Shown here: in pieces, positions 18,841 through 63,911 of the stretch
How positions within the stretch are numbered: the first letter of the stretch is position 1
Layout: the number at the start of each line of letters is the position of its first letter
The notes under the pieces: generated by a model
Told to the model about the DNA's origin: nothing
Seen by the model: only the letters and a program-made list of their open reading frames with translations
Database searches by the model: none
Assembly (NCBI GenBank): GCA_965637545.1
Contig: OZ281495.1
Span: forward strand, 22,010,001-22,074,000
Direction: 5' to 3'
Origin: Phallusia mammillata
Taxonomy: Eukaryota
Length of the DNA stretch: 64,000 nt
Position numbers and translations under genes: made by a program

Positions 18841-21800
18841 CTAATAAGGCACTTTAACATTTCCAACAAATGGACTTTGCAAATACGCGACTGCCTTGTG
18901 TTTAACGCAGTTGCGTTCAATTTCATAGTTTCCGCACAGAACGTAGTCATCGACAGATATTTCTTCCAGCATGTCCGACAAGTCAATATATCTACAACAA
19001 AAACCGATATAACACACAACAAAAAACGGTAAAAATGCATTTTTTATTGCTAACCCCATAGCTACAGCCTTGTTGAGGTGAAAAGCGTGATCCGCTGTGC
19101 GCGTGTGACCGGCGATTTTGCCATTCCGCCATATTGGTTCCTCGCCGAAAAGTTGAACCGGGCTAAAATATGAAATCGAACACGAATAAATGACTCATCG
19201 AGCTAATCTTAGTAATTAGTATATAACATACTCGTTTATCGTAAAATATATGAAGCATTTTTTCGGCTGACTTTTGCCTAACTCAGTTAATGCATCAGAT
19301 CCGATGTAATTACGATTGTCATCACACAAGTGGATCAGGCGCGCTTCAATCGGCGAATCGTCTGTTCGTAAACTTCCACCCCAGTTGTGAAAACCTTGAC
19401 AAGAAAGAAAATGTTTAAACATCTGTGAAATTTGTGTTCTATTGCATACAACGTTATAGGGACCATTGAAAATTAAAAAGTGCGAAGAGTTGGTTCTTAT
19501 AATTACTGATAATTTGCCTTACCCGCTTCGATTCCGAGTGATTTTATTGCACGGCATCCTGCGTCACAACCGCCATGTTTCGCAGCTTCTTGCATAACTG
19601 CTTCATAAATTATTACAGCTTGTTCATTTTTACATGTTATTTCATATCCCAACTCCCCGACAATAGAATTCCTGTCATCATAATAGTGTGCTTGCTAATT
19701 TTAAAATTAACGTATAGGCACACAATTTGTGCTGCATGGATCACCAATTACCTGATAAGCTGGACGTTGATATCAGAAATTTTGGAAAACATAAACTGCC
19801 CAGGCGCAAGCGTCTTTAAATTCTTTCCATGGAGCAGTTTGTCCAACACGATACGGCTATAAAAGTATGGGTTTGAAAAAGTAAAACATAGTATCATCGT
19901 AAAGAAGGGTTGTAAATTGCAAACATGAGAGACTTGGCAAACCTTTTAGGTCCTTGCAAACTTAGCATTGTAAGCTCATCAGTTCTGTCCGTAACTTTGT
20001 ATCTAAGGTTTCTTCCACTTAACACGTCGTCAATGTGACCTTTACAATATCCCGCGGTATCTTCTCTTACGTTCAGGTAATACTTGATCCCTGAACAAGT
20101 AACATGACATGAAGTATTATGTTTTTTTATAAATTTAATTTTATTTGGTATTTGGTAACAAATATATACCTATTGTGAAACAGTTTAGAATTGACCACAC
20201 CTGCTTTAGATTGACCAGCAGTATTAAGACACAGTAGCATTAAAATATTTTAAGAATGCCTGTCTTCAGCTTTTTCAGGCTCTTCAACGAAAAACAATTT
20301 GTTAGTTGGAGACGCTTTAGACAAAACTGAAACCACCCTATCATTTTCACGCGAGTGCCGTTTGTGTATTATGCTAGTTTTAAAATAGTAACAATTTTCT
20401 GCAGACAATACCATTACTACAACTGTTGCAGTGCAACATAAAAGCAATTAAAGATTGCCGTACAAGAACATTTAATCGTTGTTGTTTGTGATACGCAATA
20501 GTGATGCACCGAACCCGCCTAAAAAGGTTCGGGCCGAAACCGAATATTCGGCCACGAGGCCGAATAATTTCGGCCGGATCAGGCCGAACCTAAAATCCTG
20601 TTCTTATAGATGTTTTCAACTGAACCTTGTGTCGTTGATGCGAGTGAAGTGAATTATGACAAATCAAAATCACTTAGGCCTACACCATCTGGAAGCTTTA
20701 CTAAATTTGCAATATTTTGCAGACAACGTGGCTCGTATTTTATAGATACCACAATTAGTTAATTTATGACGTTTTGTATTGGCGAAAATGATAGTTTGGG
20801 CATTAATTCTATGCAATCAAAAAGTTCGGTTTCGGCCGAATTTTCAAAAAAGTTCGGGCCGAAACCGAAACATCGAAAAACAGCGTATTCGGCCGAAATG
20901 TTTCGGCCAACTGAAACTTCGGTGCATCACTAGTACGCAATACGTACACGATAATCTGCGTTAACCTATTGTGTGATAGCCGTGCGGGAAAAAAATCTTG
21001 ATAACCTTTTACTGAGGGTTTGGTGATGCGTTGTTTTTATGGGTTAAAATGCGAAATTTAAATATCGTTTGACGTGATGTTTTCCACAAGAAAACAATAA
21101 GGTCAGCTAAGCTTAGCAAGACTAACGATGCAAATTATTGAGTGAAACCATGGCTATTTATTGGAACGTGCTCATAAACTGGGTTGCTGCCTCGAAAATA
21201 CAGTTAAATTTTACCCAACGAAATTGTTTACTTCATGAGTTATAGCAGCGGTCTGGCACAATCGCTCTGCTCTGCGCCGCTGCAGTTAAAAGTATGTCAA
21301 CTAATTTAGGCGTGGTTCACATATTTTAGTCCGCAGTGGCTAACATCAGGTCAAAAATAACGCCAAAACCTTTCGATACATCCTATCGATTATATTGTTG
21401 TGGTAGAACATTTAGGTTTCGTTTGATGAAGGGTCATTCACAAAATAACGAGGGTAACTGTGTAAAGTATGTTAATTTAACAAAATGTTTTCCATATAGG
21501 CTCCCTTAAAGCCGATTTAAATATGCACGTCTTTGGCCGTTTCAAAATTGCACGTTTTAACGTCATGTGGGTTAACTAATAAGTAAATTGCTCATGTGTT
21601 TTTATTTAAGAGTATCTGGAAAAAATGTTGAACGAACTTAAAAAATAAAATAGAACAAAAAAGTGTTTTCATCGGAGCAGGGGACTCCTAATCAACCGTT
21701 TACATCTAAATGGGCAGTTTTTAACAATTGTTTTCTTTCGGCAAAGGTTAATATAAATGGCAAAGGTTAACAAACACTCACGGCCAAAGCTTATATGTTC

Positions 21801-24800
21801 TTCCAGGGCATATATTTATCGTCACATTACGTTTGTTCATTTTTTAAGATCATACCGTACCCCGCCATTTCTGCACAAACTACCAATGTTATAGAATAGA
21901 GACATAATAATATCTCACCACCATCTTCAGTGTCCATCTTACAAACAACAAGATCAGATTCAATCCCGCCCTTATCATTTAACATCAGGGTGTAGGTGCT
22001 CGTATTGCAGTTCGGGTTGGCAGTGACGTCAGAGGAGAAGAGAAGTGTAGCGGCCTTGGTGGCGTCTGGACCTTCCAGCACCAATTTACCCACAGAACTG
22101 GAGTTAAACACAGCACATGACGTTCGGCATGTTATGCACTCCCTTCCTATCTATACAAAAGTTCTTGTAATCAATCTAATCAAATCAAATCTTTTTCACC
22201 ATTTTTGTCTTGCTAAACGAAAAATATTTGCATTTGAATCATTTTAATCAAATATGGTAATAAGTTAGCAAAAAAGAAGATCTTACTATTTCATGAACTA
22301 GACCAGGATACCCAAACGTGTGGTCGTGTTTTAGTTGATCTCGATAGCCATAATCCTTATGAACTTCGTTTCCATACGCTCCATAAAAATCATAATCTTT
22401 GATTTCATGTTTTGTTTTGGGCATAAAATACGCCGGTACCTCAGAGTTGTATTCGTTTTTAAAAACGCAACCCCGATCCAGCAATGTCTGTTTAAAAACA
22501 TAACGTGAAACAAACAAAAAATTTCGGTTGTGCTTTTCAGCGGTTTTATGGTACCTTGTGAAGAGCATCTTTTCGGACATTTCTTCCAGCTAGGGGCTGG
22601 TCATTTGGAAACACAATGCCGTAATGTGTGACGTAGCTTTCGTGTGACCGCTCGGTAAGCCAAGTTTTATTGGAGACTAAACTTGATGGAAATCTTCTGC
22701 AAAGTTATCGGTGCGTTTATATCAGTGGTTCCCAGCGTTAAACATATACGTATGCGTTCTTAAATTGCCAACCAGAATAATTAATCATAATTGATCAGAA
22801 AGTACTGTTAAAGACATTTCGTTTATTTAAGTTTCGATTTATTGGTGTTACTTTTAAAAGCTTGTTTAAACCTAAATAACGGTATGTTACAGTCGTTATC
22901 TGAAACAAAGTTATAATTTTTAGACGAGGGTCTACAATTTAATGCTGGTTAGGTGGGTGAGCAAAGAAGGTTGGAAGTCGCTGTTTTACGCCTTTGCTGA
23001 CTTTCTTTAGTGAGTGTAGGTTACCTTATGTTCCAAGTAAACATATCGAGTTCGGGTTTGCCGCGGATAGCCATTAAAGCAATTTGTTTTCCAGCACCTC
23101 CGCCCAACATCATACCGCCGCCGTTAAAACCACTCGCGTGGAAAAACCCTCGTACGTCTGGGGACTCCCCGACAAGCGGTTTACCGTCAGGAGTAAAAGA
23201 TTCTGTACAAAATGTTGCGTTGATATAGGCTACTGATTTTTTTTAGGTCTAGATGTTTAAACCACACAAAATAGTACCGAAATGTGAACACCTAACCAGG
23301 GATTATTTAGTGTATCGTATCACACAGTTTAACTTCTTTTAAATCTTTATCGTGTTATATTTCTATTTTGGGTGGTATTTTACCTGGCCCACAGACAGTG
23401 CTGCGTATTCCCGACTTTGCAACTGCCGGCATTATTTCACAACCAGTTTCCAATAGCGGTCCGTACGTATCCCAATTTACATCATAAAGTCCAAATGCAA
23501 AATCGTTAGCCACCTTACAAAATTCAACAAATTAGAAATTTCGCCAGAATCATATACAAATGATATAAGCACCTTTTCGCATAAAATCGGGTTACTCTCA
23601 TACCCTCCAACTTGTAAAGTATCTCCCTGTCTTTTGATGTACATCGACCCATCATGATGCCGAACATTTGGTAGCTCACGAGCACCCTCAATCGGCTGAG
23701 TGATTGCATACGCTTGTCTGTAAACCACCTGTGGCGTCTCCACCCCAATCATCTGTTTGCAAACATTTGATTATAAATCCAATATTTGCCAATAACTATT
23801 ATTAAAAGAGAACTGTATTCTCAACATTCAAATTACACTCTGATCTTTAGGGTACGAAAAAAAACGCGCTGCCAAACGATTAAACGTATAATCCTCAAGT
23901 TTTAAAGACTAGAATCAGTGTGACTTTCGACAGTAACAATGAAGGGTACCGCTTTTCAATGTTTACAAACATACTTTTCCAATATTAGGAGCCCATACAC
24001 CAGCGCAGTTGATCACATGTCCTGTTGTTATTGTACCAATGTTCGTGTTCACTGAGGAGATGCGCCGTATCCCATAGTCGTCAGTTTTTGTAGAAAGGCT
24101 TGTAACTTTGCAACCTTCTAACACCTTTTCAACAAATCAAAGAATTTGTTATACGTTTTATTAAACACATTTTTGAGTCCTGTTTTACCTTTGCGCCATA
24201 TTTTTTAGCAGCTTTTGTGTAAGATGAGCAAGCTCCCGTGGGATCCAAAGTACCATCATTTGGACTGTACAGTGCTCCAACAAACTTTGAAGCATCTAGA
24301 AGAGGGTGGATTGAAGGTATTTCTGAATTCGAAATAAGCTGAGATTCGATTCCAAACACTTTCGCCAGCTAAAAACACAATGTTCCAACGCACCATGTTT
24401 ACTTTACAAATATTTTGCACCAGTATTAACGCGGCTATACTACAGCTATAGCTGGCGGACCACCAAAATACAAGTGGTTCTAAAAATTGAAACATGATAC
24501 ATTGATACAACAACCGGAAACAAAAAAGGCAATAGGGTGGCATTTCAAAATTTTGGTTTATTGTATTGCTGCAAAACATATCCAACTGTACTATTTCATA
24601 AGGCAGCGCAGCAGAAATCGTAACCCACAATACAATATTATGTTTTAGGACCTTTTTGTCTCACTCGCGAGGAGATTTTTGCTAGTCACCACTGCTGCCT
24701 TAAGTGCAAGCAGCGTCAGCAGTACACAAGTGATTAGTTATATATTAATCTTACCGTTTTCATTCGTTCGTAAGCCTTCATCCTTTGTGAGTTACATGCT

Positions 24801-25344
24801 GTGAACAACCCCCCGGTCTGAATCCAGCCTGTTTCGGTATTAACCTCTTGTGACAGTATTGACGTCATCAAGGCGTGTGTGTCAGTCACAATTTTCAAAT
24901 CCAATTCGTTCGTTCCCACTCTCCACAACAAACCTACAAATTTAGGGTTAATTAATAGCCTGACACGGACGTTTTTACAAATACCACAATCGACTTCATC
25001 AAAAAAACATAGCCTTTCCTCAATTGCAGATACAATATTAGCAGTTTACCAGAAGTGTGCCATGTTGTTCCAGCAGTCAATTTGTCTTTTTCAAGAAGAA
25101 CGACTTTTCCAGCTCCAAACTTAGCAAGATGATAAGTAGTACTACATCCAATACTTCCACCTCCAATTACAACTACATCAGCTTCCGTAGGTAACTGCTG
25201 CCTTGCATCAATGCTACTTTTACGATGTTGCCATTTTATGTTGTTAGTAAACGAGCTGCTGCGTAGCGTGCTGAGAGATATGCAATCAAAGTGGCAGGAA
25301 AATCCTGCTGACCAAAAGCCTTTCACAAGTTTGTGTGTAGACAT
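18841..25344 (-). CDS. SARDH-like: Sarcosine dehydrogenase-like flavoprotein, copy A (divergent; open reading frame intact)
   Basis: 16 exons: 25344-25050, 24933-24755, 24368-24189, 24124-23975, 23752-23573, 23513-23384, 23202-23025, 22696-22555, 22487-22287, 22150-21919, 20090-19943, 19856-19752, 19671-19523, 19394-19232, 19162-19055, 18991-18841. FAD motif [11 protein letters not shown], covalent-flavin motif [25 protein letters not shown]-protein-like C-terminal half (GGIESDL, LQGPKSR, GELGYE). All phases join without stops. Start codon choice is less certain. Confidence 0.92.
20499..20932. mobile_element. hAT-type MITE in intron 10 of SARDH-like copy A
   Basis: Perfect 15-bp TIR TAGTGATGCACCGAA / TTCGGTGCATCACTA; 8-bp flanks ATACGCAA / GTACGCAA (7/8); subterminal CCGAAA/CGGCCGAA repeats. 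Confidence 0.85.
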
Positions 25345-27151: not shown

Positions 27152-30100
27152 TCATGTGGATTTAAACAAGCCACGCACACGACGTCGTTTTGGATCAAAT
27201 GGACTGTTCAAATACACATTCGCCTTGTGTTTGACAAAGTTGCGTTCAATCTCATACTTTCCGCCAAGAATATAGTCATCGACACTTGATTTATCATTTT
27301 CCGGAATGTCGACGTAGCTGAAACAAAAAAATATGCGAAAAAAAAGAAATAAAAAATATATCTAATTTCGAATGATAAAACATGTACACCTTTTTACTGT
27401 TTTTGGTGAGACACATCTTTGCAGGCTCACAAACAAATAATCTATTCTAATTTAAAAACCCTTGGCTAAATACAGGAACATAAAATGTAGCAACATTCAT
27501 CACATTACCGATTTTGTCTGATATATTTTTGAATGATCGATTGTAACACTTTTCGGTTTCAGTCGAGTTTTCAAAAAAAGTACGATCCAAAACCGAAACG
27601 ACGACCAAATATTTCAGCCAACCGAAACTTCACTAGCTGATACAATTAGAAAAATTTCAAGGTGAAGACAATTCAAAGATTCAAAGTGTATTTAAAGGGC
27701 ATTCACTAGACCACACCTTTGTAGTTAAAATAGCAAATCAAATAACACGAGCACTTACCCCATGCCCACACCCTTGTTGATATTAAACGCGTGAACTCCA
27801 TTTCGGGTGAAACCAACCACTTTTCCATCCCGCCATATTATCTCCTCCCCAAAAAGTTGTACTTGGCTAAAGCACGATCATCAAACAAAGTGATTAGTTG
27901 GAACTTTGTAGGCGTCAAAACACTTAAAAATGCAACGCAATCTTACTCGTCAACTGTAAAAAAGGCTAGTGATTTTTTGGGGCGCTGTCCTCTCATTTCA
28001 GCTACTGCAGCAGATCCATGATAATGCCGATCGTTGTTACACAAGTGCAACAAACGCGACTCCAGCGGCGAGTCGTCGGTACGCACACTGTGTCCCCAGT
28101 GGTGAAAACCTTGGAAAAACATATTTTTGTAAATACTTAACAAGCATTTAAATAAACATTAGCACCACTTCTCATTAAGCACTAAACAACCAGTCAGGTC
28201 GATTGCTAGTGACACAACTACTTTTCTACCTCATTGACAAAATGAACTTGCATGTGTTTTGAAGTATGACAAGAATTGATTGTCCCAGATCACCAGCTCA
28301 AGACGGGTTAAACGGGTGCCAAAACATTCAAAAAAATATGGTATGTAAACAATGCGTACAAACTCATCACTTGGTATAAGCATTTGCAAACATTGGTGCT
28401 TATTGCTTACCAGCTTCAATGCTTAGTGATTCCATAGCCCGATATCCTGCATCACGGCCTCCATGCTTTTTTGCTACTCCCATGATTGCCTCATAAACTT
28501 TCACAGCGTGTTGACTCTCACATGACACCTCGTATCCCAATTCCCCGACGAAAGAACGTCTAAACGATAAGCCGTATGAATTTAGGCATATGGGAATATG
28601 TGCAGCATACGAGACAGGCAAAGTTGCTTGTAATTCGACCTTCGACGGGCTCACCGCTCAATTGGTAGAGCGCGAGTCACTGAAAGACTCCTGTCGTGGG
28701 TTCGAATACTACCGCAGGCTAGATTTTTCTAGCCTACGCCTTGTCGTATGGGAATGCTTGGTGACCGGCTGATTTGGTATGACGCCTTTATTAGGTCTGA
28801 CACACTATATTTTAGGAATATTAACGAAATGTTCTTTGTGTTAACAAAGTATTTCAACTTACCTCAAAATACCCACATTAATTCCGACAATGTTACTCAA
28901 CGCGAAATGGCCGAATTGCAGACTTTTGGTGACATCACCTGTGATCAGCTCCTTCAGTACCGCTCGACTGTCAAAAATGCATAATAGTTGTCAGCACGAT
29001 GGCATAAACTTATTTCCATAACAACAACAAAACAACGCTTTTTTGGTGCGGAGGTATAATTATCACAAAATGGTTAGTGAAAATGTAATGGTGAAAAACT
29101 AACCTTTTTGGCCCTTGCAAACTCAACGTTGCAAGCTCCTCAGTTCTGTCTTTCACATTGTAGTTGAGGCCACTTGTACTTAACACATCACTAATATGAC
29201 CTTTACAGTATTCCGTAGTTGCTCCCCCAACCGTCATAAAATAGTCAAAATCTAAAAACAAGTTTGGTACATTAAAAAGGGGTTTAGGAGTAACGAAGGA
29301 TTTAGATTTGAGTTTGCAATACGAAGTAATTTCTTCAATATTGCCACAAAAACCTTTATATAACGAATGAACACATAAATCACATGCCTTTTATTTAAGA
29401 TAAATTTTGTCGGTTTCTTGAGTGTGTGTGTTTACACCAAAAAATATGAGTTAAAACGTTCATTAAAATTCGTGAAAACAGAAGCTCCACATATTTCTAA
29501 AATCTAAACGTTCCATGGTTTGCCATTATTTTAAATTCTTTAGGTCCAAACGACTGAAATTTCAGGTCCTGTGACCTTTTTGCAACGATAATTTGCAAAA
29601 AGATATCACACAGTCCACTAAAGTCAACCTTACCATGATCTCCAGTGTCCATTTTACACACAACAAGATCAGATTCAATCCCTCCCTTATCATTTAACAT
29701 CAGGGTGTAGGTGCTCGTATTGCAGTTCGGGTTGGCAGTGACATCCGAGGAGAAGAGAAGTTTGGCAGCCTTGGTTGCGTCTGGACCTTCCAGCACCAAT
29801 TTACCCAAAGAACTTGAGTTAAACACAGCACATGACGTTCGACATGTTACGCACTCTTTGCTTATCTGTAGTGATATGATATGCTTGTGAGAAAATAATT
29901 TAATCGCATAAAATGAGAGTTTTGATAATTTTTTGGGTTAAAAATAAAAATAACAGAATGTTATGATGATATTGTAGGACAAACATTTAAAAAATGCAAA
30001 TGTGACCAATACCGCTTCGTGGACAGGTCCAGGGTATCGGTAAGAATACTCGTGGTTGAGAAGGGTTTTGTATTGGTAGTCTTGGTGAATTTTGTTATCG

Positions 30101-33100
30101 TATGCCCCGTAGAAGTCGTACTTTTTCACTTCGGCTTTCGGTCCATCAGTGAAATAAGCTGGTCGCTCCCATCCGTGTTTTTCCTCGTAAAAGCAACCCC
30201 GGTCCAACAAAACCTTTGGTCACATACAAACGGTCTCAATTTTCGTTAAGTCGACGCCTTGCTTAGCATTTAACTGGACGTACTAGATGTACGGAAGGCC
30301 AGACACGTTTGCTTGTTGACAGTGTATTTGACCTTGATTAACCAAGTCATATCTAGTCAACTCTTAAAACACTTCTAAGAAAATCCACTTATCTACAGAT
30401 TGGAGCTGGGGACATATGCTTTAAACCTTAATATTGTCGACAGATGACAAGGCAAACATAAAAAAAAGGAAAATGACGGAATTAGCCAGAAAGTAGAAAA
30501 AGTCTGCATAGCAGGCTATAGCAGGCAAAATCTGAATGTGCACCACTACTTTATAGTTTATGGAAATTTTATTGTCTGAAATCTGCATTACGTTAAGGCA
30601 AGTATTAATACTTTATTTAAGTATCAACTTTTGTTACCTGATGTAGAGCGTCCTTTCGCATGTTTCTTCCTGCCAGGGGCTGATCGTGTGGAAACGACAT
30701 ACAATAATGCTTCGAGTATGTTTCGTGAGATCTCTCGGTAAGCCACGTTTTGTTTGTGACCAAGCTCGAAGGAAATCTCCTGCAAAGAAATAGAAGGGCA
30801 CTTTCTCCACACTGCCATATACACTATGCGACCTAGATGAAAACTGCCGTACTATATTTTACAATTTGTTACACAGTTTTACAAAAATTCCAAATCACGA
30901 TCTTCAAATTTCCGAACGCCTTGACAAGGCGAATTTACATGCTATCCAAAACCGTGAGATTGTTGTGAAAACCACAAGTTAAAAGTTTACCGTATGTCCC
31001 ATGGAAACATGTCAATTTCTGGTTTTCCACGTAATGCCCAAAGCGCTATTTGTTTTCCACCACCTCCGCCGAGCATCATGCCGCCACTGTTAAACCCACT
31101 GGCGAAAAAAAATCCTCGTACTTTTGGCGATTCGCCACACAGTGGCTGTTTATCGGGTGTAAAAGATTCTAAACACGGTATAGATGATAAACTGGGATGT
31201 TAAAAAATGAGACTCTAATTTTTAATGTGGTATGAACTCTTCGTTTTTTTACCGGGTCCACAAATTGTTGATCGAATTCCCGTTTTTGCAATGATAGGCA
31301 TAGCGTCACAAGCAATAGCTAAATGTCGACCAAATACATCCCAGTCTAATGTATAGAGACCAAATGCAAAGTCGTCCGCAACCTACAAAAACAATTTGAA
31401 TGACTATAAACGTTAAAAAGTGCACAAAATGAAACAACGATGTGTTTATGATTAAAACTTCACTTGCTTCTTTGCAGAAGATTGGGTTTGCCTCATAACC
31501 TCCCACTTGCAGTGTATCGCCCTGCCGTTTCATGTAAACCGAACCGTCGTGGTCACGAACGTTCGGAAGATGACGAGCGCCCTCTATCGGCTCGGTCACA
31601 ACGTACGCATGTCTGTACGTAACTTGGGGAATGGCAATGTGGACCATCTGTGCAACAGGATGTTAAGATCATAAACATCACTTGTTGTGCAGCTTCAACG
31701 TACCTGACTTATGTTGGGCGCCCACACGCCTGCGCAGTTTATCACTTGGCCAGTTTTAATCGACCCACGGCTTGTTTTTACTGCAGAGACTCTTTGGATT
31801 CCGAAATCGTCTAACCTCGTGTCGATTCCTTCGACGCCGCAGCCCTCAAAAACCTAAGGCGATCATGACTTATGACATAATAAGATACCAACGGTGAAAA
31901 CGTTCTTTTATGTTTTTGAAAGGTTCACTGGACACATTTTAACATTTAAAGCTTCCTCCCCAGTTACAGTTTTTATGGCATTCGATTTTGGCGTGTGTTT
32001 TACCTGAGCACCATACTTTGCTGCTGCTTTGGTGTAGGAAGTACAGGCTCCGGTTGGATCCATAGTGCCATCCAGTGGATTATACAGAGCCCCAACATAT
32101 TTTGAACTATCCAGCAGGTGATGCACTTGAGGTATTTCAGCCGCCGATAAAATGTGAGTTTCGATTCCAAAGACTTTTGCAAGCTGTTACAAACAGTTAA
32201 ATAAAAATTCCTTCGAACCGGAGTCGAACCAGTGACCTATGGATATCTGACGGTTTGCAACCACTACAGTCCACCGCTCTACCAACTGAGCTATCGAAGG
32301 ATGCAATTATGCATGTGGAAAAGCGCCACTTATGCTTTCGAATCCATATGCTTTTGGGCGGCATTTGAAGCGACGCTAAACCAACAATCATTGTTCCCGT
32401 TTCCAGGCAGCAACAATTTAATCCATAGAAATTAGAGATGTGTAAGCCTATCGCCGCATAATTTAACAGTTTTTTGTGCGACATCGAAACGTAATAAATC
32501 GCTGACAGAATAAATACCGTTAATATTAACTTACCGTTGCCATTCGTTTGTATGAGTCCAATCGGGTTTGGTCATTGGCTGTAAACAACCCTCCCGTTTG
32601 TATCCATCCCGTTTCACTGTCAGTCTCCTGCGGTAATATAGTCGTCATCAAGGTGCGGGTATCGTCCACAATCTTCATTTCAAACTCATGTGGCACAGCT
32701 CTCCACAGTAAACCTAAATACAACATGCACTAAGACAGTGGTTCTCAAACTTTGTATTTCAAAAAACGAAACTTGATTGCAGGATTTTAGCTAGTTACGC
32801 AAAATTGCGCATAACAATGATCCGAAGACAGCATCTGACATCACAGACAAGAAAAAACACATTACCATTGTGCGCGAACAATTGCATTTTTGTTAGTTGT
32901 CATGCAATAAAGGCTATTTGTTGAGCAATGGAGACGATTCTCAATTCTACTTTGATTCAAACTTATTCAACAAGATTATAGAATTACTTCAACCTTTTTG
33001 CGGTCCCCCCAAAATTGCCTCACGGACCCCACCGCTGTACTAAGAGGACCTTACATTTTTTCAAAGACTGCTCTAATTGATTGGTTCCATGAATTAAAAA

Positions 33101-33814
33101 TAGGTTCCAACAAACTTTACGCTTTGGTAAAAAATGTATGTATAACATAAAAAGGTTAAAACATCTGTGATGATACTTGTGACATAACCTATTTTTTCTT
33201 CATGGCCTTGGTATTACAAACCTTTCTGCCATATAGTTTAATAGTGTCGCAATTACTTTTTCGCATCAAAACAATCAGAATGACTCTCTACTTATATGGC
33301 CACAATTAGGCCACCAAGTATGGCTCATTTCTCATTTAGTTTAATTTGGTTTTAGTGTATGACCATCAGAGCCAATGGGAAGATAAGTTCACTAACCTGC
33401 TGTGTGCCATGTTGTTCCAGCAGTCAGTTTATCTTTTTCAAGAAGAACAACCTTCCCAGCTCCATACTTAGCTAGATGATAAGTTGTACTGCAGCCAATA
33501 CTCCCTCCCCCTATCACAACTACATCAGCTTCTGTAGGTAGCTGCTGGGTGCTGTTGGTTCCATTCTTGCGACTGGAGGAATGCTGATGTAAATTGAATT
33601 TGGTTGCTGTCCTGCTGCAGTTTAGTGTGCTGAGAAGTCTGCATAGTAAAATTTGCATTAACACAGCATACCTTGTTGTTGTTGTGTTTTTTAAATGCTC
33701 TTAAATGTGTAGTAAATTGTGCAAGGATATATGTTACCTGACGCTTTGTGCAAAATATTTTTGTTTGTCAAGATTCAGATGAAGTTTGTTGCATCTCCTG
33801 ATAAATCTCATCAT
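27152..33814 (-). CDS. SARDH: Sarcosine dehydrogenase-like flavoprotein, copy B (closest to canonical SARDH motifs)
   Basis: 17 exons: 33814-33738 (basic mitochondrial-type presequence [13 protein letters not shown]...), 33638-33397, 32713-32535, 32183-32004, 31853-31704, 31647-31468 (GC donor), 31382-31253, 31168-30991, 30779-30638, 30213-30013, 29865-29634, 29251-29104, 28967-28863, 28559-28411, 28109-27947, 27866-27759, 27317-27152. Motifs [64 protein letters not shown]. Internal exon lengths equal those of copy A. Confidence 0.94.
27545..27635. mobile_element. Degenerate right-end fragment of the MITE family seen at 20499-20932
   Basis: CGGTTTCAGTCGAGTTTTCAAAAAAAGTACGATCCAAAACCGAAAC...CAGCCAACCGAAACTTCACTAG aligns by eye with the right end of the 20499-20932 element. 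Confidence 0.55.
28647..28728 (+). ncRNA. tRNA-like Pol III unit (tRNA pseudogene or SINE head), antisense within an intron of SARDH copy B
   Basis: A-box/D-arm GCTCAATTGGTAGAGC, 5-bp stem GAGTC/GACTC with 7-nt loop, B-box GGTTCGAAT, TTTTT at 28724-28728. The acceptor stem does not pair. Confidence 0.65.
32209..32300 (-). tRNA. tRNA-Tyr(GTA): tRNA-Tyr (GTA) with 19-nt intron, inside intron 3 of SARDH copy B, same strand
   Basis: CCTTCGATAGCTCAGTTGGTAGAGCGGTGGACTGTAG-[TGGTTGCAAACCGTCAGAT, 32263-32245]-ATCCATAGGTCACTGGTTCGACTCCGGTTCGAAGGA. Perfect 7-bp acceptor stem, anticodon GTA at 32267-32265, intron after position 37, downstream TTTTT terminator. Confidence 0.96.
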
Positions 33815-45381: not shown

Positions 45382-47897
45382 ATGAAGTCTTTTCTTTCCT
45401 TGGGTCAAAAAATGTTGATGAAACTTTCTGCCATACGTAATTCTGCTTCAATGTATGTTTCGGATTGTGTAATGCTATAGTTAAGCTGTAGAAACTTTTA
45501 TAATTGCTATTTTAAACTATTTTAGCTTGCAACAAATCAGGTATGCTCATGTGACCAAGTTGGGCAATCAAGCTAAGGGACTGCTGTTTCGACAGGTAAC
45601 TGGGAGCATTGTAATATAGCATATTTAACATTATAAAATCTTGTGTTCAACACTTTTTTCTAGTTGTTCCATGATGCATCTTACACATACACATACTTTC
45701 TTGGCTGTGCAAAAACCCGCAAAGCTGTGGTCATAGATCCTGTCTTAGAAATGGTATGTCAGCATTAAAATTTCTGGTTGATTCCATTCTAAACATATGA
45801 TCATATAGTAAGAAAAACTTTTTTTCAGGTGGACAGGGATATTAAGTTTATAGAAGAAATGAATCTGAAACTAGTTTATGGATGTAAGTTGTGCTTTATT
45901 TATAACATTTTATCAAAATAGAGTTTTGGAAATACTTTGCAGTAAACACCCATGTCCATGCTGATCATGTAACTGGAACAGGAAAATTAAAACAAAGAAT
46001 TCCTGGGTTTCAATCAGTGTTATCGAAAGCATCTGGTGGAAAAGCTGATATGTTAATTGAGGATGGTGAAGTCATTCAGTTTGGTGAACAGGTGCATAAA
46101 AATTATATTTTGATGTGTATAGGTATTTGCAAATAAAAATTAGATACTTTTAACTCCTGAGAAAGATATTATTCAGTGGAAGTTGTCTTGATAACTGAAA
46201 TAAACACAATTAAAAAATGTTCAATTTGGTCTGTTTAAAGTTCTTTCAGGTGATACAAAAGTGCCATGGTATTGCTACTTTATTCACTGTGCAACCTTTT
46301 GGTATTAGTTTGCACAAGTGGCTGATTTACTGAAACCACCATAGCCTTTTTGGATTAAAGGACATAATTTTGACAGTCAGCTAATTTCAGTTTGTTTAAT
46401 TTGGCACCAGCTAGGTTATTGTTTGCATTAGTTCATTCACTTTATGTCTATGACATTTTTTCTCAACCAGCGGTTCATAAAGAAACAAATTAGTCATAAA
46501 TCCTAAAAAGAATATGTTCAGCAAAATGTTCGATTAAAATAAGTCAAAAAATACTGTGTGTTTGTTTCATGACAAGCTTGAATTGCTTTAGTATGTTTAT
46601 TGGTTTTTGTAGTCAATTCACTGTTCTGCAACCCCTGGACACACAAATGGCTGCATGACTTACATTCTACCAGATCATTCAATGGCCTTCACTGGCGATG
46701 CACTTCTTATTCGAGCATGTGGAAGAACTGATTTTCAACAAGGCATGGTTACATTGTTGTAAAATTGTTTCAAACCAATGTAAAAAGTACCATGTACAGA
46801 TGATGTGCAATGTGCTCACGTTGTTAAGACTCTATATTGTGTAAGCTGCATCCCAATATGTTTAGTTAATGTTGTACTTCCTTCCATTTTAGGAAATGCA
46901 GGGCAGCTGTACGATTCAGTGTACAAACGAATTTTTTCTTTGCCTGATCATTACTTCCTCTATCCAGGCCATGACTACATGGGTAAGCATAAAAGCTGAT
47001 GTTTGCTAAGGTCGGAACATTTTCTGGAGTGTACTTTAGTGGTTAACAGAAAACATAAATTTGCACAGTCAGGTATTTGACTGGCTGGCAAAGAAGGTTT
47101 AATAAATTTGAGTTCACAAATGTGTGCTTCCCTACTTGATTTTTCTTACTTTTACACAAATTGCATATTCATGGAAACTTTGTGTAGATTTGTTTGATTA
47201 AATCCCCAAGTTGCTGCTGTGGATTCTATGCACAGAGGACCACCTTTACAAAAGAAGTGTGTTTCTACTTTTTTCTGTTTTACAGGCTTTTCTGTGACGA
47301 CAGTAGCCGAAGAGAAAGTTCTTAATCCTCGTCTCACACTGAGCAGAGATGAATTTATCAACTTCATGAAAGAGCTGAACCTGAAGTATCCAAAACTTAT
47401 TGGTATAATCTAAAATACAAGTGTATTTGGTGTGTGTTTGTATGTTTATGCTTAAAGAAGTTCTTTTACAACGTTTTTTGCAGTATTGAAACCGACCAAA
47501 CATGTCCAGTAAAAAATATGCATATATAAACAATGCATTCTAAAAACAGCAAATCAGCAAAAGTAGTGTTTGCCGGTCTCAAACATGGCCTTTGGCTTAG
47601 TTGCTTTATGTTTGCTCGTTGAGTGTACCTGTGGTCTACCCAGAGCACCTATAACACTAGATTCTTTGTCAAGTGTAGGGTGAATAAACCAATAAACGAA
47701 TGGGTGTGTCATTTGTTGTGCAGCAATTCAGCAACTTGAAAATTAATCTACATTCACTACCTGTTGCTTTATTTATTTATTTTTTGAAAAAAATGTTTTG
47801 TTTCTTATCAGACATCGCTGTACCAACGAATCTCAAATGTGGTGAGATCAGCAAAGAGGCTCTACAAGGATCTGCGGAACTGCTCAGCAAAAAATGA
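45382..47897 (+). CDS. ETHE1: Mitochondrial persulfide dioxygenase (metallo-beta-lactamase fold)
   Basis: 9 exons: 45382-45452 (alternative in-frame ATG 45412), 45526-45595 (GLLFRQ), 45664-45753 (TYTYFLG...AVVIDPVLE), 45829-45883, 45943-46091 ([11 protein letters not shown], HxHxDH), 46613-46742 (TPGHTNGC...[19 protein letters not shown]; GC donor), 46893-46982 (YPGHDY), 47286-47402 ([12 protein letters not shown]), 47812-47897 (AVPTNLKCG). Confidence 0.95.
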
Positions 47898-49107: not shown

Positions 49108-50317
<1,210 letters not shown>

Positions 50318-51067: not shown

Positions 51068-54000
51068 CTAGAGTGCATTCAACTTCTTTGCGAGCTGCTC
51101 TTGTAAATTCAATGAATATTTTCCAAATAGCCTTTTGAACTGTGGATCGAATGGGCTCGCAGTGTAAGCCTTGGCCGGGTGTTTCACCGCCATTCGTTCA
51201 ATTTCAAAGTTTCCTTCGGTAATTTGTTTGTTAGTAATACCCGGAACGTTTACGTACCTGCAAATGTTTAAAGGATTTAACATAGTTTGGAAAAAAAACA
51301 TACTACAAGGATATCGTCAATGGCGTTTACCCGTATCCAAGGTTTGTATCCAAAGCGTAAGCAAAATCAGCATGACGCAGGAAGCCAACAACTTCGTCAT
51401 TGAACCAAATCGCTTCATGGCCAGTTATAGGAACATCCCTAAAGTAAATATTCATCACACATTGCAGCTCAGTACTTGATAACAGCGGACAGTGAAAGTT
51501 ACAGACGCCTTTATGAAATTTTAAAGAGTTTTCGTTTGTAAATTGAAAGAAAAAAACAAAAAAACAGTTCGTCGCCTTATTAATTATCAATCAAGTAATG
51601 TCTGGATTTAGGATTAAGCTCAGCCTTTTCTAATTCATTTTAAAATGTTTTGTTTTTCTCACGTGTCAATAGTGAAACAAACAAGCTTTTTGGGTAGTGG
51701 TTTCTTCTGGAGTTCGGCCAGGGCTTTGCTACCAATGTAATCGGTTGAATTTTCGCAGAATCGTAGCAAACCCGCTTCACCTGGTGTGTCGCCAGCGTGA
51801 ATGCTATGTGACCAATGATGGAAACCTGAAAAGAATTGCATTTTACAATGGTTAACATGCATCATGTTAAATGTATAACGTAAAGATTTTGTCATGTCCT
51901 TGCAACGTACAACTTAATAAAAATACCCGTTTCTGAGCTTAACGATTCCATTGCACGGTATCCGGCCACGCATGCGTTGTGTTTGTCTGCTTGCTCAATG
52001 ATAGCGTCATGGATGCATTTTACGTCATCGCTATGGCAATGAACTTCGAATCCAAGTTCCCCGACGAAGGATAATCTTGAACAACATACATCAGCTCCTT
52101 GCAATGTGGAAAAGTACCTGTTTTTCAAGTATATATACTAACCTGCCAAGCATCACATTACGACCAGCAATTTCACTGTTACCCCAATGTGCATATTCGA
52201 GCCTATTCAGGATATTACTGTCTTGGACGATCGGCGTAAGGATGTCGCGACTAAACAAAATAGAAAAAAAAGTACATAAACTGCCCGTCTTTGGATTTGA
52301 CAAGATTCCTACTAAAAGCCATTTGTGCCAGTTGGTCCGCGTCTGGCCCCGTTAAGAATATTTTTGCCATGTAAGAAGAATCCAGAAGAATAGCTGAAGT
52401 TCTGCAAGTCAAACATTCCTTTCCAACCTACGATATTTAGAAACACTGATGAGCAGAGCTGATTTCATGAATTAATATCGCAAAATAGGTAAGCATGTTT
52501 TGTTTTATACCCGAAAATAGAACAAAACATGCTTACCGATACGAAAGCTTCGGTGAAGCAAACAATATTTCACAATTTAATTATAGTTTGGTTAACAATA
52601 CGCCTGCGAGGGGTTAGTGCAGCGGCCTTGTGCTTACAAGATTGTGATTGCTAACCCCGTCTCGACGACTTGTTCTTCTGTTAGCATTCCTTCATCGAAA
52701 TGAATGACACATTCTTAAATCGAACACACCAAATAAAATATGGGAGACTTATTGTGAGTGTATTTTAAGTATATTATTTCCGCAGTACCCGTATAGCGAG
52801 GACAAAACTAACAATTAAAAACTTACAATTTTGTGGGAGTCAGGAAATTCAAATGTGCAATCGTTCATTATAGCATCACAATACGGGTACGGATAGTGTT
52901 TCTTGTTGTCATAGGCTCCATAAAAATCGTAGTCAAGGACCTTCAGGTTACGATTGGGTTCATTTTGACCGTCTTTTAAGTAATAAGCTGGACGTTCAAA
53001 TCCATATCGGATGCCAAAGAGTGCTCCAAGATCTGAGTCAGTCTACGTAAAAATATGGAAACAATATGAACAAAACGCGAAAACTAAAAAAAAAATATTT
53101 ACGTTCAATAGGAAAAGCTACCTGATGAAGTTTAGTTTTCCGTTGGTTTCGTCCCCCAAGGCTGTGATCTCTAGCGTAAACCAAACTGTAACGCTTGGCA
53201 AACCTCTCATGACACGTCTCTGTTAGCCATTTGTTATAATTCGTAAAGGAAGTCGGGTATCGTCTGAACATACATGGTGGAATAAATGTTGTGCCCAGGT
53301 TCTTGCCTCATTTTAAATTTTACCTGATGTCGCAGTTAAAGAGATTAATTTCAGGTCTTCCGTGCGCCACCCAGTGGGCTAATTGCCTTCCCGCTCCCCC
53401 TCCTAACATCATTCCTCCACTGTTGTATCCGCTACCCACAAAGAATCCTCGCACTTCAGGCGACTCACCCATGTTTGGTTTTCCATCCGGTGTGAATGAT
53501 TCTGCACGAAAGTCAAACATTCGATCACGCATCCTTGAAATGATTGGAGTATACCGGACATTTCAAACACAAATTTGATCAGTTTCAGAATCGACAGGTA
53601 AATTAATTTTTGTGGTCTTCACAAAAAAGTTGTCTTTCCCAGCAATTACATGACCCCCAGACATAGTTAGAAGTGAGGCTGAAATTACAGCCCAATACCA
53701 AGCTCGAAACCCGATCCGAACATTTTTGTTATAAAGCCCCAATTCAGCCTTGAGAAGGTATTTTTAACGGGTTTGAATGGCGAAACATATAAAGTAGCCA
53801 ATTGCGAAGTCAGGCCTAAATCAAACCTACTTTATATCAACTTAATGTAAAAAACTACGATCCGATATACCTGGCCCGCAAACCGTCGATCTTATCCCAA
53901 CGTTTCCAACAGCTGGTATTCGATTTACTGCGGCATCGAAGTGCTGTGCAAATATATCCCAGTCGACATCATAAAGGCCAAATGCAAAATCAGCTGGAAG

Positions 54001-56024
54001 CTTAAAAGGTAAAGAGGTTTTTAGAAAGTGAAAAATTTAGATGTGTTTTTCACATCAAAAAGTTAAAAGTAAACGTGCTTAAATTATTCTACCCACGTCT
54101 TTTACGAGGTGAGGATTCATTTCATATCCGCCAAATTGCAGAGCATCACCTTGTGGTTTAATATACACGGTACCGTGATCCTTTATAATCGGTGTGTTTA
54201 AAATTCCCTTTATGCCTTGGGTCACAATGTAAGCATGTTGAAAAGTTAACTGCGGAATTCGAACTCCGGCCATCTGCATAAAATCAAAATAGAACATAAA
54301 TATGTCGTTTTTATGCGACGCTTGTTTCGCACCTTTTTATTATTCCTTTATGCGACTAAAGTGTATGTAAACGGGTGTAACTGATGTGGCCGTCATATCA
54401 CTGATGATGGCATGAGCATTTGCCGAAACGTTTGAACAATAAAGCATGTCGCCTTTTACGTCTATTTGGGCCGTTATTTTCACCATTAAACTTATGAACA
54501 GATCCGTATATAGTGTTCCAAAGAAAATAAATAGCACCAAACTATGTCATGAAAAGCAAACACACCATGTTTACCTACCTTTCCGATGTAGGGCGACCAG
54601 GCGCCGGCGCAGTTTACAACATTGTTTGTCTTGATGGTTCCCTTGCTTGTTTCCACACCGACAACTCTTTCAAGACCAAGATGGTCTTCGGCTTTTAAGA
54701 TACCATTTACGCTGCAATTTTCAAATACCTGTGGACAATAACCGATTGTTTTCCACGCCCCATATGAAGTTTAAATTTGTACATTTGTAATTTACACTAC
54801 TGTTGAACCAGAAATCACAAATACTGCAGAATACTACCTAAACTACCCAGAAGTTTTGACATTATTTTTACCATGGCGCCACGATGCTGAGCTGCTTTAA
54901 CATACGCCATGCAATATGTTGCGGGATCTATAGTTCCATCACCTGGCGAATACACAGCTCCGTATACATCATCGACATTCAACAGTGGATGGATTACCTT
55001 TGCCTCTGACGGCGTTATTTCTTGTATTTCGACTCCAAGCCCTTTAGCAAACTTGGAAGACGGTTATAAAAAGTTATTAGAAAATTGTATGTGACCAGCT
55101 GCTTACTGATGTCTGAAGCGTAATATCTTTGTATTCTTCCTTAGACTTTGCTGTTAAAATTGTGCCAGTACGTTGCCATCCGGCACTATCGCCATTTTCC
55201 TCAGGTAGTACCTTGCTTATTAAATCTCGTGTTTGCAGTTGTAACAGTGTTTCTGATTCGCTGCCACGAAAACTCCACAAAATTCCTACAATATACAATT
55301 TACGACATAAGAAAAGGTGATCCAAGCATTTTAGGGGCCAGGTTGCAGCAGTTGTTTGTGTGGCCCTGGAGAGGATAAAATGTGCTGGAACGAGATTTTT
55401 CTGACACCCCATTAAACACTAATCGTCTAAATAAGCCGCAGTTTGCATCAAAAACAGAGACCAAAATGCTATACTTTCAAACTTTCAAACTGGACAGGTA
55501 AATCATAAAATTCCGTATAGCTGTTATGTACCATGCTCATATATTTTTGGTCTATTTGCAAACTGCTTTATGGCTCACAAATTCAAAATAAACCTTATTC
55601 GTGTGCGTTGATGTCATATGATGCTTTTGCTTTATTGTTGCGTTTCTCCTTACCAGCCCATTGTAAATGTTTGTGTTTAACTAACCTACAAATAGAGCTT
55701 GTTCAGTAGTTTACCTGCTGTATGCCAGGTTGTTCCAGAAGTAATTTTGTGTTTTTCAACAAGTACAACTGAACCACCACTTTGCTTTGCAAGGTGGTAA
55801 GCAGTACTGCATCCGACACTTCCACCACCGATTACAACCACATCAGCTTCAGTTGGAAATTTGGCCCGGTCTAAAGTGTTGTCACTCTTGCTTTTGTGAA
55901 TTGATGATTCATATGGCACATCCTTAACATCTTGTGATTTGTAACGAGTGGAATGAAGATAAGTTCTTGTACACCTCAAAGTGGCCAATTTATTCAAATC
56001 TCGCATTCTGGTAGTAATTGACAT
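51068..56024 (-). pseudogene. SARDH-like: Sarcosine dehydrogenase-like copy C with an internal deletion causing a premature stop
   Basis: Exons 56024-55715, 55285-55107, 55051-54872, 54728-54579, 54273-54097, 54000-53871, 53501-53324, 53263-53122, 53042-52827, 52427-~52272 (truncated), 52250-52143, 52075-51927, 51825-51663, 51438-51331, 51257-51068. Relative to copy D, the 3' part of exon 10 and all of exon 11 are missing; read-through gives FMYFFFYFV-stop at 52253-52251. Confidence 0.8.
54301..54531. mobile_element. ~230-bp insertion in intron 4 of copy C, possibly a Penelope-like retroelement remnant
   Basis: Absent from the homologous intron of copy D (61635-61709); flanked by ATAAAT on both sides; contains CTGATGA...GAAACGTT followed by AATAAA. 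Confidence 0.5.
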
Positions 56025-61400: not shown

Positions 61401-63911
61401 CAAGCGAGTTTGGATTAAGGCATTCTGACAGTGTTTGTTTCTACATTCAAAACTCACGTCTTTTACTAGGTGAGGATTCATTTCATATCCGCCAAATTGC
61501 AAAGCGTCACCTTGTGGTTTAATATACACGGTACCGTGATCCTTTATCATCGGTGTGTTTAAAATTCCCTCTATGCCTTGGGTCACAATGTAAGCATGTT
61601 GAAAAGTTAACTGCGGAATGCGAACTCCAGCCATCTGCATAGCATAAAAACAAAACATAAATAGCACCAAAATATGTCATAAACAAGCAAACAGACCATG
61701 TTTGCTGACCTTTCCGATGTAGGGCGACCAGGCCCCGGCGCAGTTTACAACATTGTTTGTCTTGATGGTTCCCTTGCTTGTTTCCACACCGACAACTCTT
61801 TCAAGACCAAGATGGTCATCGGCTTTTAAGATACCATTTACGCTGCAGTTTTCAAATACCTGGGCAAAATAAACAGGAAGTTTTACCGCCAAAAGAATAC
61901 ATCAAGAAGTTTTACCGCCAAAAGATCATAAACCACAAATAGCCTACTATAGGAAGCAGAAAACTACCTAAAACTTCAAAATTGTTTTACCTTGGCGCCA
62001 CGATGTTGAGCTGCTTTAACATATGCCATACAATATGTCGCGGGGTCTATAGTTCCATCACCTGGCGAATACACAGCTCCGTACATATCATCGACGTTCA
62101 ACAGTGGATGTATTTCCTTTGCCTCTGCTGGCGTTATTTCTTGTATTTCAACTCCAAGCCCCTTTGCAAACTTTAAGGACGGTTTCATTGTACTAGTTTT
62201 ATAACGTTTTATATAACAGTGGAACTACTTACTGATGTCTGAAGCGTGAAATCTTTGTATTCTTCCTTAGTCTTTGCTGTTAAAATGGTGCCAGTACGTT
62301 GCCAACCAGCACTATCCCCATTTTCCTCGGGAAGTATCTTGCTTATTAAATCCCGTGTTTGCAGTTGTAATAGTGTTTCCGATTCGCTGCCACGAAAACT
62401 CCATAAAATTCCTACAATACATTCGTACGCAAGGTAACAAGTGAGCTTAATCTAATGCAGGGGTCGGCAACCTTTTAAGCGACGCGTGCTAATTTACTTG
62501 TTATGTTCATGTGGAAATGACATCGCGTGCCATCATTTTTCTGAGTATTAGTGGTTTGTGCCAGCTGATATCAATAATAAGGAGAAGCAGAGTGTTTTGT
62601 GCATCTAGGCTGGATTTTACCACTTTGGCACAATAAAAAATGAAAACAAGCAGTGTAACAGGTTAAAATTAGTACGCCAATATAAACACGCAAATCGCCA
62701 GGGGTTGCCGACCCCTGGTCTAATGTAAACACCACAATCTCCAGTTCTTGTTGTAAAGCCAAATCAACAAGCAATCGTTAGTCCAGGGGTGGGGAACCTG
62801 CGGCCTAAAGGCCGCATGCCTTGTACCGTTAGCGTCTGGATACATATCCAGGATACACAAATATCTGCACACAAGTTACGAAAGGAAACAGCGACTAGCT
62901 AATCCCCAACACACAATCAAACGCGCAACACAGACGCTAACGTTACAAGGCAAACACACACAATCTCAAACACAAGTTATAATTTGCGAACTTTATGTTT
63001 TTATATGTTGATTGCTACAGTATCTACATTTTCAAGTAACATACAGAGTCGATTGTTCGCGCACTATATTTGTATTGTTTTATTATTGCTTGTGACATAT
63101 TAAATTGACATTAAAACAATCCCACGCAAAGTGATTTTACAACACTAAACTTAACTCATTCTGTATTTTACTTTCGAAAGGAATGAACTAACTTTCAGTT
63201 GGTAACTCAACAGTTTTATTTTGCCAATATATTTTCAGTTTTATAAATATATTTAGCTTGGACTGCAAGTGCTCGAAAAAAATTGCCAAAGGACCGTTAT
63301 GAAAAAAAATTAAAAAGTTTGAGAACCGCTGTTCTAAATATTATTTTTCATTTTTTGTATTAGTTTTATTGTTGTTTTGATTCACCTAATTCGTGATTGT
63401 CGTGGTCAACTCGTGTGTCGCTGTACTTACATACTTTATTGTTTGCAGTTACGTTTCTTATTGTCATACATTTTTTAATTTTGTAACTGAAGCCCTCCAA
63501 TTTTGAATGTTTGTATTTAACTAACCTACCCTTGCGGTTTATTTTTACAAATAGAGCTTGTTCAGCATGCCATAAGTAAAAACTATCAAAAATCCTGTTA
63601 CCTGCTGTATGCCAGGTTGTTCCAGAAGTAATTTTGTGTTTTTCAACAAGTACAACTGAACCACCGTTTTGCTTTGCAAGGTGGTAAGCAGCACTGCATC
63701 CGACACTTCCACCACCGATTACAACCACATCAGCTTCAGTGGGAAATTTTGCCTGGTCCGTGGATTTATCACTTTTGCTTTTGTGAATTGATGTTTCATA
63801 TGGCACATCCTTAACATCTTGTGAACTGTTGCGAATGGAACCAAGGCTAGCCCTTGTACACCTCAAAGAGGTCAGTTTATTAAAGTTTTGCAATCTACTT
63901 GTAATTGACAT
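58401..63911 (-). CDS. SARDH-like: Sarcosine dehydrogenase-like flavoprotein, copy D (intact, recent paralog of C)
   Basis: 16 exons: 63911-63602, 62411-62233, 62170-61991, 61859-61710, 61634-61458, 61374-61245, 60962-60785, 60720-60579, 60511-60296, 60218-59990, 59933-59786, 59640-59533, 59462-59314, 59030-58868, 58771-58664, 58590-58401. Motifs [67 protein letters not shown]. Confidence 0.93.
62458..62717. mobile_element. hAT-type MITE in intron 1 of copy D
   Basis: Perfect 15-bp TIR CAGGGGTCGGCAACC / GGTTGCCGACCCCTG; 8-bp flanks ATCTAATG / GTCTAATG (7/8). Confidence 0.88.
62784..63331. mobile_element. Composite MITE cluster in intron 1 of copy D (hAT-like ends with a nested small inverted-repeat element)
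   Basis: hAT-like left end CAGGGGTGGGGAACC at 62784; nested 21-bp inverted repeat GCCTTGTACCGTTAGCGTCTG (62818-62838) / CAGACGCTAACGTTACAAGGC (62931-62951), 20/21; hAT-like right end TTTGAGAACCGCTG at 63318-63331 that does not match the left end exactly. Confidence 0.55.

Follow-up and report, generated by a model that had tools for sequence, protein, structure and literature searches.

Sarcosine dehydrogenase (SARDH), an enzyme of one-carbon and choline catabolism, is normally encoded by a single and very conserved gene. Why does one locus of the ascidian Phallusia mammillata hold four genes of this type, and do they encode four different enzymes? The locus lies in a stretch of 64,000 nucleotides (contig OZ281495.1 of assembly GCA_965637545.1, positions 22,010,001 to 22,074,000 of the forward strand), referred to below as the window; coordinates are positions within it. 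A preliminary description of the window, made from its letters alone, took the four copies for a lineage-built family of mitochondrial N-demethylases or amine dehydrogenases acting on marine osmolytes. Our literature search brought up no tunicate paper devoted to SARDH or dimethylglycine dehydrogenase (DMGDH), the sole match being one that names SARDH in passing as a marker gene of one gut position. We consider it very probable that the locus is a gene block conserved in ascidians, in which SARDH has given rise to two old subfamilies confined to tunicates, here called g1 and g2, and to which a fast-evolving copy (gene A) and a broken copy (gene C) have been added.

Four paralogs with a common exon-intron structure

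All-against-all blastp of open-frame pieces revealed about 15 similar pieces per paralog, arranged in four colinear sets (~18.8-25.4, 27.2-33.7, 51.1-56.0 and 58.4-63.9 kb). They belong to four paralogs of the SARDH/DMGDH/PDPR architecture, all located on the minus strand:

18841..25344, minus strand: gene A (g1), 16 exons, 896 amino acids, open reading frame intact, all introns GT-AG
27152..33814, minus strand: gene B (g1), 17 exons, 909 amino acids, open reading frame intact, a single GC donor, otherwise GT-AG
51068..56024, minus strand: gene C (g2), exons projected from D, deletion of ~410 bp, predicted product of 612 amino acids
58401..63911, minus strand: gene D (g2), 16 exons, 918 amino acids, open reading frame intact, GT-AG introns

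Models of A, B and D were obtained by spliced protein-to-DNA dynamic-programming alignment with two guide proteins (P0164 and P0156), gene ends being set by hand; the 5´ end of A is uncertain, and an ATG at 25344 was assumed. The outer limits of the cluster had been placed exactly beforehand, 18841 being the end of the A stop codon and 63911 the ATG of D. Each gene has 15-16 introns, with positions and phases in common. Phases of the 15 introns common to A, B and D are identical (1,0,0,0,0,1,2,0,0,1,2,2,1,2,2), introns of C are confirmed by RNA joints, and B has one extra 5´ exon up to 33814, with an extra intron in the presequence. Introns common to all copies imply duplication at the DNA level and rule out retrocopies or processed pseudogenes.

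Protein identity reaches 65% between A and B and 90.5% between C and D, and falls to 44-45% between the pairs. The preliminary description had thus correctly seen four same-strand paralogs with common introns, duplicated as DNA, and had rightly divided them into an older pair A/B and a recent pair C/D. The distance between the pairs, put at about 17 kb of unrelated genes, is 17.25 kb (33814 to 51068) and holds genes for HIF-alpha, ETHE1 and CTHRC1.

Exons of D encode the Pfam domains DAO, FAO_M, GCV_T and GCV_T_C, in that order. The last three are found in B too (as Pfam matches of P0164), A aligns over its full length, and the C product is left without most of GCV_T and all of GCV_T_C owing to the deletion and a stop codon. 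The first coding exon of all four copies carries a GxGxxG motif (VVIGGGS[IV]GCS) followed by TTWHT. As announced earlier, translations of all four copies keep the histidine of TTWH (A His96, B His104, C and D His101). This motif aligns with 'STWHAAG' of human DMGDH (structure 5L46), and its histidine is predicted to carry the covalent link to flavin adenine dinucleotide (FAD); in human DMGDH, FAD is linked covalently at His91 (PMC5082570). N-terminal extensions of 45-60 residues, poor in acidic residues, precede the FAD motif.

B matches 902 of 909 residues (99.2%) of P0164, the UniProt entry 'Sarcosine dehydrogenase, mitochondrial-like' of Phallusia mammillata. The closest full-length relative of a profile made from one folate-domain exon (GCV_T, 80 columns) is the Ciona savignyi protein P0010. 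All matches listed from a search with P0010 (at least 120, mostly vertebrate SARDH) bear the name sarcosine dehydrogenase, and the proteins of A, C and D are not among these listed public proteins. Matches named 'mitochondrial-like' include proteins of Ciona intestinalis, C. savignyi, Clavelina lepadiformis, Styela clava and Phallusia mammillata. NCBI and UniProt thus already name the orthologs of the four genes 'sarcosine dehydrogenase, mitochondrial-like'. The GCV_T exon profile also matched P0006, a metagenome protein of 3185 residues from ENA, in 14 separate stretches (E 5e-21).

Two old subfamilies in ascidians

The phylogeny was reconstructed from 35 rows and 939 columns under LG+C20+F+G4, with ultrafast bootstrap and Shimodaira-Hasegawa-like approximate likelihood-ratio (SH-aLRT) supports. 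Rows were hand-picked from the P0010 matches, the vertebrate SARDHs being a sample of those listed; there are no DMGDH or PDPR rows among them. All tunicate copies form one clade (100/100) with a long stem (0.70), situated inside metazoan SARDH. The two diverged clades of the preliminary description correspond to two subfamilies of this tunicate clade. Subfamily g2 (100/99) unites the Ciona pairs, the Clavelina pair, C and D, two metagenome-derived sequences and a Styela row. The g1 remainder consists of two groups, both starred in the tree, one with Styela and one further sequence, the other with Ciona, Clavelina and A+B. Orthologs thereby assigned are P0160, P0161 and P0163 for g1, and P0010, P0153, P0154, P0156 and P0157 for g2.

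The A+B group (100/100) is nested beside the g1 copies of Ciona and Clavelina, which places the A/B duplication in the Phallusia lineage; it is the only duplication specific to that lineage. In g2, copies cluster by species in four species (C+D with 100/100, the Clavelina pair, both Ciona pairs), a pattern expected from repeated tandem duplication or from concerted evolution of an old pair. Judging from the sequences compared, the g1/g2 split predates the phlebobranch/aplousobranch split, and probably also the separation of stolidobranchs.

A transcript-like sequence from a public run, P0168, groups on a short branch as sister to all tunicate SARDHs together (93/93). Its source may be a slowly evolving tunicate or another deuterostome, and it could help to date the duplication.

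Conservation of the gene neighbourhood

We compared the surroundings of the four genes with those of their orthologs in Clavelina lepadiformis, the one species used for synteny. Besides the SARDH-like genes, the window contains:

5886..17685, plus strand: thrombospondin gene beside A (tblastx against Clavelina, ~6.9-17.7 kb; Pfam TSP_3, TSP_C)
36104..40159, minus strand: HIF-alpha ortholog (tblastx against the Clavelina HIF gene, truncated; matched part only, the gene continues 5´)
45658..47888, plus strand: ETHE1-like metallo-beta-lactamase gene (tblastx; weak Lactamase_B match at 45906-46133)
49120..50109, minus strand: CTHRC1-like gene (tblastx against the Clavelina gene)

Pfam matched almost nothing on raw open frames between B and C. 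The Clavelina counterparts are marked by the domains bHLH_HIF1A, PAS and HIF-1a_CTAD (HIF gene), Lactamase_B (ETHE1-like gene) and PF25815 CTHRC1_C (CTHRC1 gene).

On Clavelina sequence OX392440.1 (19.448-19.508 Mb) the order is HAD hydrolase, g2, g2 (P0156), CTHRC1, ETHE1-like (minus strand), HIF-alpha, g1 (P0161) and thrombospondin (minus strand). A second assembly of Clavelina lepadiformis agrees in gene order and in the two-copy layout of g2. The window shows the Clavelina order in exact mirror image. This colinearity implies that the HIF/ETHE1/CTHRC1 block is not a recent insertion: it does stand between the two pairs, as the preliminary description reported, but the split is ancestral. 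Nor can the four genes be regarded as a system that this lineage built, for the two subfamilies are common to Ciona, Clavelina and Phallusia, probably also to Styela, and the block around them is colinear with that of Clavelina.

Altogether 7-8 genes are colinear between Phallusia and Clavelina, and in this long-kept neighbourhood a hypoxia factor lies together with two genes for mitochondrial enzymes.

Relationship to DMGDH and PDPR

Against vertebrate SARDH, P0010 (g2) scores 700-750 bits with 41-43% identity over 99% of its length. P0153 (g2) scores 306-309 bits against the human and rat DMGDH structures (5L46 and 4P9S), no higher than SARDHs. On these scores (~300 vs ~750 bits) orthology to DMGDH was rejected, and g1 and g2 are, by sequence comparison, clearly derived from SARDH rather than from DMGDH. 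P0020, P0118, P0058 and P0277, tried as DMGDH or PDPR seeds, scored ~260-320 bits, and none is a DMGDH ortholog. A sequence-atlas look-up showed PDPR clusters as more distant neighbours.

We also compared by eye about 30 FAD-domain sites changed in g2 with human DMGDH (5L46). L113F, M434L, F442Y and, in part, Y162F agree exactly with the DMGDH residue, and G149T, G212T and N306I/M are similar to it in kind; all these matches are common conservative changes.

Divergence and selection

SARDH is 68% identical between amphioxus and coelacanth and 61% between Hydra and coelacanth; for tunicate copies and coelacanth the range is 42-49%. We took as invariant the 257 columns unchanged in 17 non-tunicate SARDHs (Hydra to vertebrates). 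The numbers of these columns changed are:

g1 of other ascidians: 40-48 of 257
gene B: 51 of 257
gene A: 70 of 257
g2 including C and D: 64-91 of 257 (D 70)

Ascidian copies have thus replaced 16-35% of the otherwise invariant SARDH sites. Changes diagnostic of g2 in the loop of the catalytic Tyr are N306I/M, R308K and a 1-residue deletion. The preliminary description had emphasized strong differences at substrate-facing motifs. It was right in so far as many SARDH-invariant sites are changed and A has lost a catalytic His (see below); that the changed sites face the substrate is a presumption.

Both g1 and g2 have been under purifying selection since the duplication. For A and B, omega (the ratio of nonsynonymous to synonymous divergence) is 0.16 at saturated synonymous divergence (dS); for C and D it is 0.14 at dS 0.33, and 0.12 downstream of the deletion in C.

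Gene A evolves faster than gene B

A has accumulated 75 lineage-specific changes and B 31 (Tajima relative rate, p=2e-5), and their branches measure 0.53 and 0.29. At SARDH-invariant sites a manual count gave ~26 private changes in A and ~9 in B. One of those in A concerns the catalytic dyad (His225/Tyr259 in Arthrobacter dimethylglycine oxidase), which deprotonates the substrate amine (PMC5082570):

23714..23716, minus strand: Gln281 of A, codon CAA, at the dyad-His position (aligned to His225 of 3gsi/1pj5)

B, C and D have the His codon CAT at this position, and A keeps the dyad Tyr. The dyad His (H290) is invariant in the 17 non-tunicate SARDHs and in all tunicate copies except A. The intact frame and splice sites of A, together with omega of 0.16 at saturated dS, indicate that A has been kept by selection. 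A is probably slowed or changed in function. B, the most conservative of the copies, is most likely the canonical working sarcosine dehydrogenase.

The two genes also share a conversion tract:

A 21914..22155, B 29629-29870, minus strand: gene-conversion tract in exon 10, the first GCV_T exon (blastn)

Within the tract DNA identity is 90.9%, compared with 70-77% in most other exons, and dS is 0.25, compared with values above 1 or saturated elsewhere. Expression of B is known through its transcript-derived UniProt entry. For A, the share of sampled words found is 0.21 in only two RNA-like runs and at most 0.07 in the others; these shares, here and below, record presence in contigs and are not expression levels.

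A second, shorter stretch of A/B similarity (88% identity) lies at 25055-25200 and 33402-33547. Intron 3 of B contains a tRNA gene on the strand of B (32208-32301, minus strand; Rfam tRNA, 58.6 bits). ARAGORN reports it as 94 nt long with an odd 4-base anticodon 'gtag'; it is probably an intron-bearing tRNA-Tyr(GUA).

Gene C carries a deletion and is still transcribed

Apart from one deletion, C keeps every exon and splice site of D without indels. The deletion of ~410 bp has removed the last 73 nt of exon 10, which breaks off after its first 156 nt, intron 10, exon 11 and most of intron 11:

52251..52272, minus strand: C deletion junction, 52272 being joined to a ~20-nt tail of intron 11 before exon 12 (counterpart in D at ~60063-59652)

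An in-frame TAG at 52253-52251 follows as codon 613, with four exon junctions downstream of it. Contigs of four public runs (X3, X4, X25 and X6) were aligned to C. The independent DNA run X3 contains a 205-nt contig (52146-52350) that spans the junction with no mismatch, and X4 covers the junction bin. Contigs of X25 and X6 skip the predicted C introns exactly, at 14 joints with CT..AC on the plus strand, and several of them match C with 0 mismatches. This identifies X25 and X6 as RNA and shows that transcripts of C are made and spliced. Between 52143 and 52425 RNA joints are missing despite the depth of X25 there, so the mRNA appears to carry the stop. Rescue of the frame by a cryptic donor (the GT of 'ATGTAC', which is in the right phase) is unlikely: it would require an intron of ~24 nt, and no RNA joint for it was seen.

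With Clavelina outgroups, the amino-acid rates of C and D are alike; with jgi158 as sole outgroup, C has a marginally higher rate (21 vs 9 changes, p=0.03). Similar rates and the constraint values given above indicate that C was constrained until recently and that its deletion is young. D is broadly expressed: 12 small RNA-like runs from 3 studies contain 0.37-0.43 of its sampled words, approximately its exon share, and spliced contigs identify two runs of this type as RNA.

Intron 4 measures 75 nt in D and 305 nt in C, which points to an insertion in C. At ~54380-54553 this intron contains a very-high-copy repeat, with a summed depth above 100,000 in two DNA runs; it is found in RNA runs as well, and many loose contig ends lie at its borders. 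No inverted or direct repeat within 54250-54650 and no Rfam match were detected for it.

Discussion

From the gene structures and family assignment, the tree and gene order, the deletion and splicing of C, and the rates observed here, the following history may be proposed. Duplication of a single SARDH gene, earlier than the phlebobranch/aplousobranch split and probably also than that of stolidobranchs, would have given a conservative g1 beside thrombospondin and HIF-alpha and a more derived g2 beside CTHRC1 and ETHE1. Later tandem events would have produced A and B (g1, in the Phallusia lineage only) and, recently, C and D (g2). By analogy with their family, the enzymes would reside in the mitochondrial matrix with FAD bound covalently to the TTWH His; the His/Tyr dyad would oxidize an N-methyl amine, the GCV_T domain would transfer the one-carbon unit to tetrahydrofolate, and the electron transfer flavoprotein (ETF) would receive the electrons. 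D would be a working g2 enzyme, possibly of shifted specificity. C was disabled recently by the ~410-bp deletion; it is still transcribed, into an mRNA that appears to stop prematurely. At most three copies can yield a full-length enzyme, and the number of functional enzymes is at most two or three.

Several points weigh against this history. The tree does not settle the monophyly of g1 as a whole, and the branch of the Styela row in g2 is very long (2.56). For the g2 pair, concerted evolution is here indistinguishable from independent duplication. With DMGDH and PDPR absent from the tree, their exclusion follows from scores alone. Expression of A and its 5´ exon are known indirectly, through the word share of 0.21 in two runs. 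Continuity of the C mRNA across the deletion appears from depth and the missing joint, no listed contig spanning it, and an intact C allele may exist in the population. Finally, localisation, cofactors, substrates and activity of the tunicate copies are argued from the family.

What are the copies for? We regard it as a real, if tentative, possibility that they are ordinary sarcosine dehydrogenases, redundant or divided by expression, that turn over by birth-and-death and gene conversion. Pairing of g2 by species in four species, the newly dying C and the A/B conversion tract are of the kind that such turnover would leave. D occurs in many RNA-like runs and A in two, as a division by expression would have it, and the covalent-FAD His and full domain set have been credited to all copies. 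Yet g1 and g2 have been kept in fixed order across deeply diverged ascidians, which goes beyond usual dosage redundancy, and otherwise invariant sites are heavily replaced in g2.

In another reading g2 would be a neo-functionalised, folate-linked amine dehydrogenase of mitochondria. It would act on some N-methyl compound different from sarcosine, such as dimethylglycine if DMGDH is absent from ascidians or another methylated osmolyte; A would be a second shift, confined to Phallusia, to an altered or non-catalytic role, and ascidians would have rebuilt the choline/betaine demethylation chain from SARDH duplicates. We hold this to be rather doubtful.

The wider proposal of the preliminary description, an undescribed catabolic system in which the copies have diversified for osmolytes such as proline betaine, other betaines and opines, is unlikely. 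It can draw on the coexistence of g1 and g2, both under purifying selection from a time before the ascidian orders diverged, from which non-redundant roles have been argued, on 64-91 changes in g2 (with a changed dyad-Tyr loop) and 40-51 in g1 at the 257 invariant sites, and on the distance of tunicate copies from vertebrate SARDH (42-49% identity, as against 61% for Hydra). But there are two old lineages and not four, C is truncated, and C and D, 90.5% identical, give no sign of functional divergence. Changes in A resemble relaxed constraint with loss of a catalytic residue more than a retuned pocket, and tunicate proteins evolve fast in general. Substrates proposed for the copies are purely conjectural, and the comparison with human DMGDH yielded 3-4 matches at ~30 sites changed in g2, all conservative.

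Could A be a non-catalytic or regulatory member of the family? PDPR, the regulatory subunit of pyruvate dehydrogenase phosphatase, is described as a non-catalytic relative of DMGDH and SARDH and offers a precedent. In A, exchange of the dyad His for Gln, ~26 private changes at invariant sites and a significantly raised rate go together with an open reading frame and 15 splice sites that stay intact at saturated dS from B, and with low or restricted expression. Still, we judge such a role for A quite improbable: the His for covalent FAD attachment, GxGxxG and the Tyr of the dyad are all conserved in A, as is the folate-domain exon, which was refreshed by conversion from B. Moreover, the change from His to Gln need not kill catalysis, if the H225Q mutant of dimethylglycine oxidase indeed retains substantial activity, as it is said to do.

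Ascidians are highly heterozygous, and C and D are both adjacent and similar, yet an artefact (uncollapsed haplotypes or assembly duplication, with the C deletion a misassembly) has a negligible chance of being true and was rejected: DNA of C and D is only 82-93% identical including introns (dS 0.33), the two genes have introns of very different length (1190 vs 429 nt; 75 vs 305 nt), D is present in independent DNA runs of two further studies, which also match C at 96% or more, one contig spanning the junction, C has its own spliced RNA contigs with 0 mismatches, and the two-copy layout of Clavelina is found in two assemblies.

Returning to the conserved block with two SARDH-derived subfamilies, its significance is twofold. 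Retention of two diverged subfamilies in a fixed neighbourhood since before the ascidian orders split makes a clean case of long-term paralog retention. The Phallusia locus, in addition, displays stages of the life cycle of duplicates side by side: an accelerated A, a newly disabled but transcribed C, and a conversion tract between A and B. A new substrate of g2, if real, would add an enzyme to methyl-amine catabolism of animals; otherwise the locus represents ordinary turnover of a gene family.

How does the locus compare with known systems? PDPR is a possible analogy for A, which retains the His for flavinylation and groups with B within SARDH. With DMGDH (5L46, 4PAA) and Arthrobacter dimethylglycine oxidase (1PJ5) the copies share fold, domain set and, presumably, channelling of one-carbon units to folate, but similarity amounts to only ~300 bits and ~30% identity, and g2 displays no convincing convergence on DMGDH residues. 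The likeness to animal SARDH (EC 1.5.8.3) is much closer, comprising DAO, FAO_M, GCV_T and GCV_T_C, a length of ~900 residues, the N-terminal extension, TTWH, the His/Tyr dyad in B, C and D, and the position of all four genes inside the metazoan SARDH clade. The differences lie in number and in divergence: other sampled animals have one highly conserved copy, and ascidians have two subfamilies with tandem copies that are only 42-49% identical to vertebrate SARDH. The annotated SARDH-like genes of ascidians are direct orthologs and, in Clavelina, stand in identical gene order. To this common arrangement Phallusia adds a second g1 gene with a changed dyad His (A) and a g2 copy with a deletion (C).

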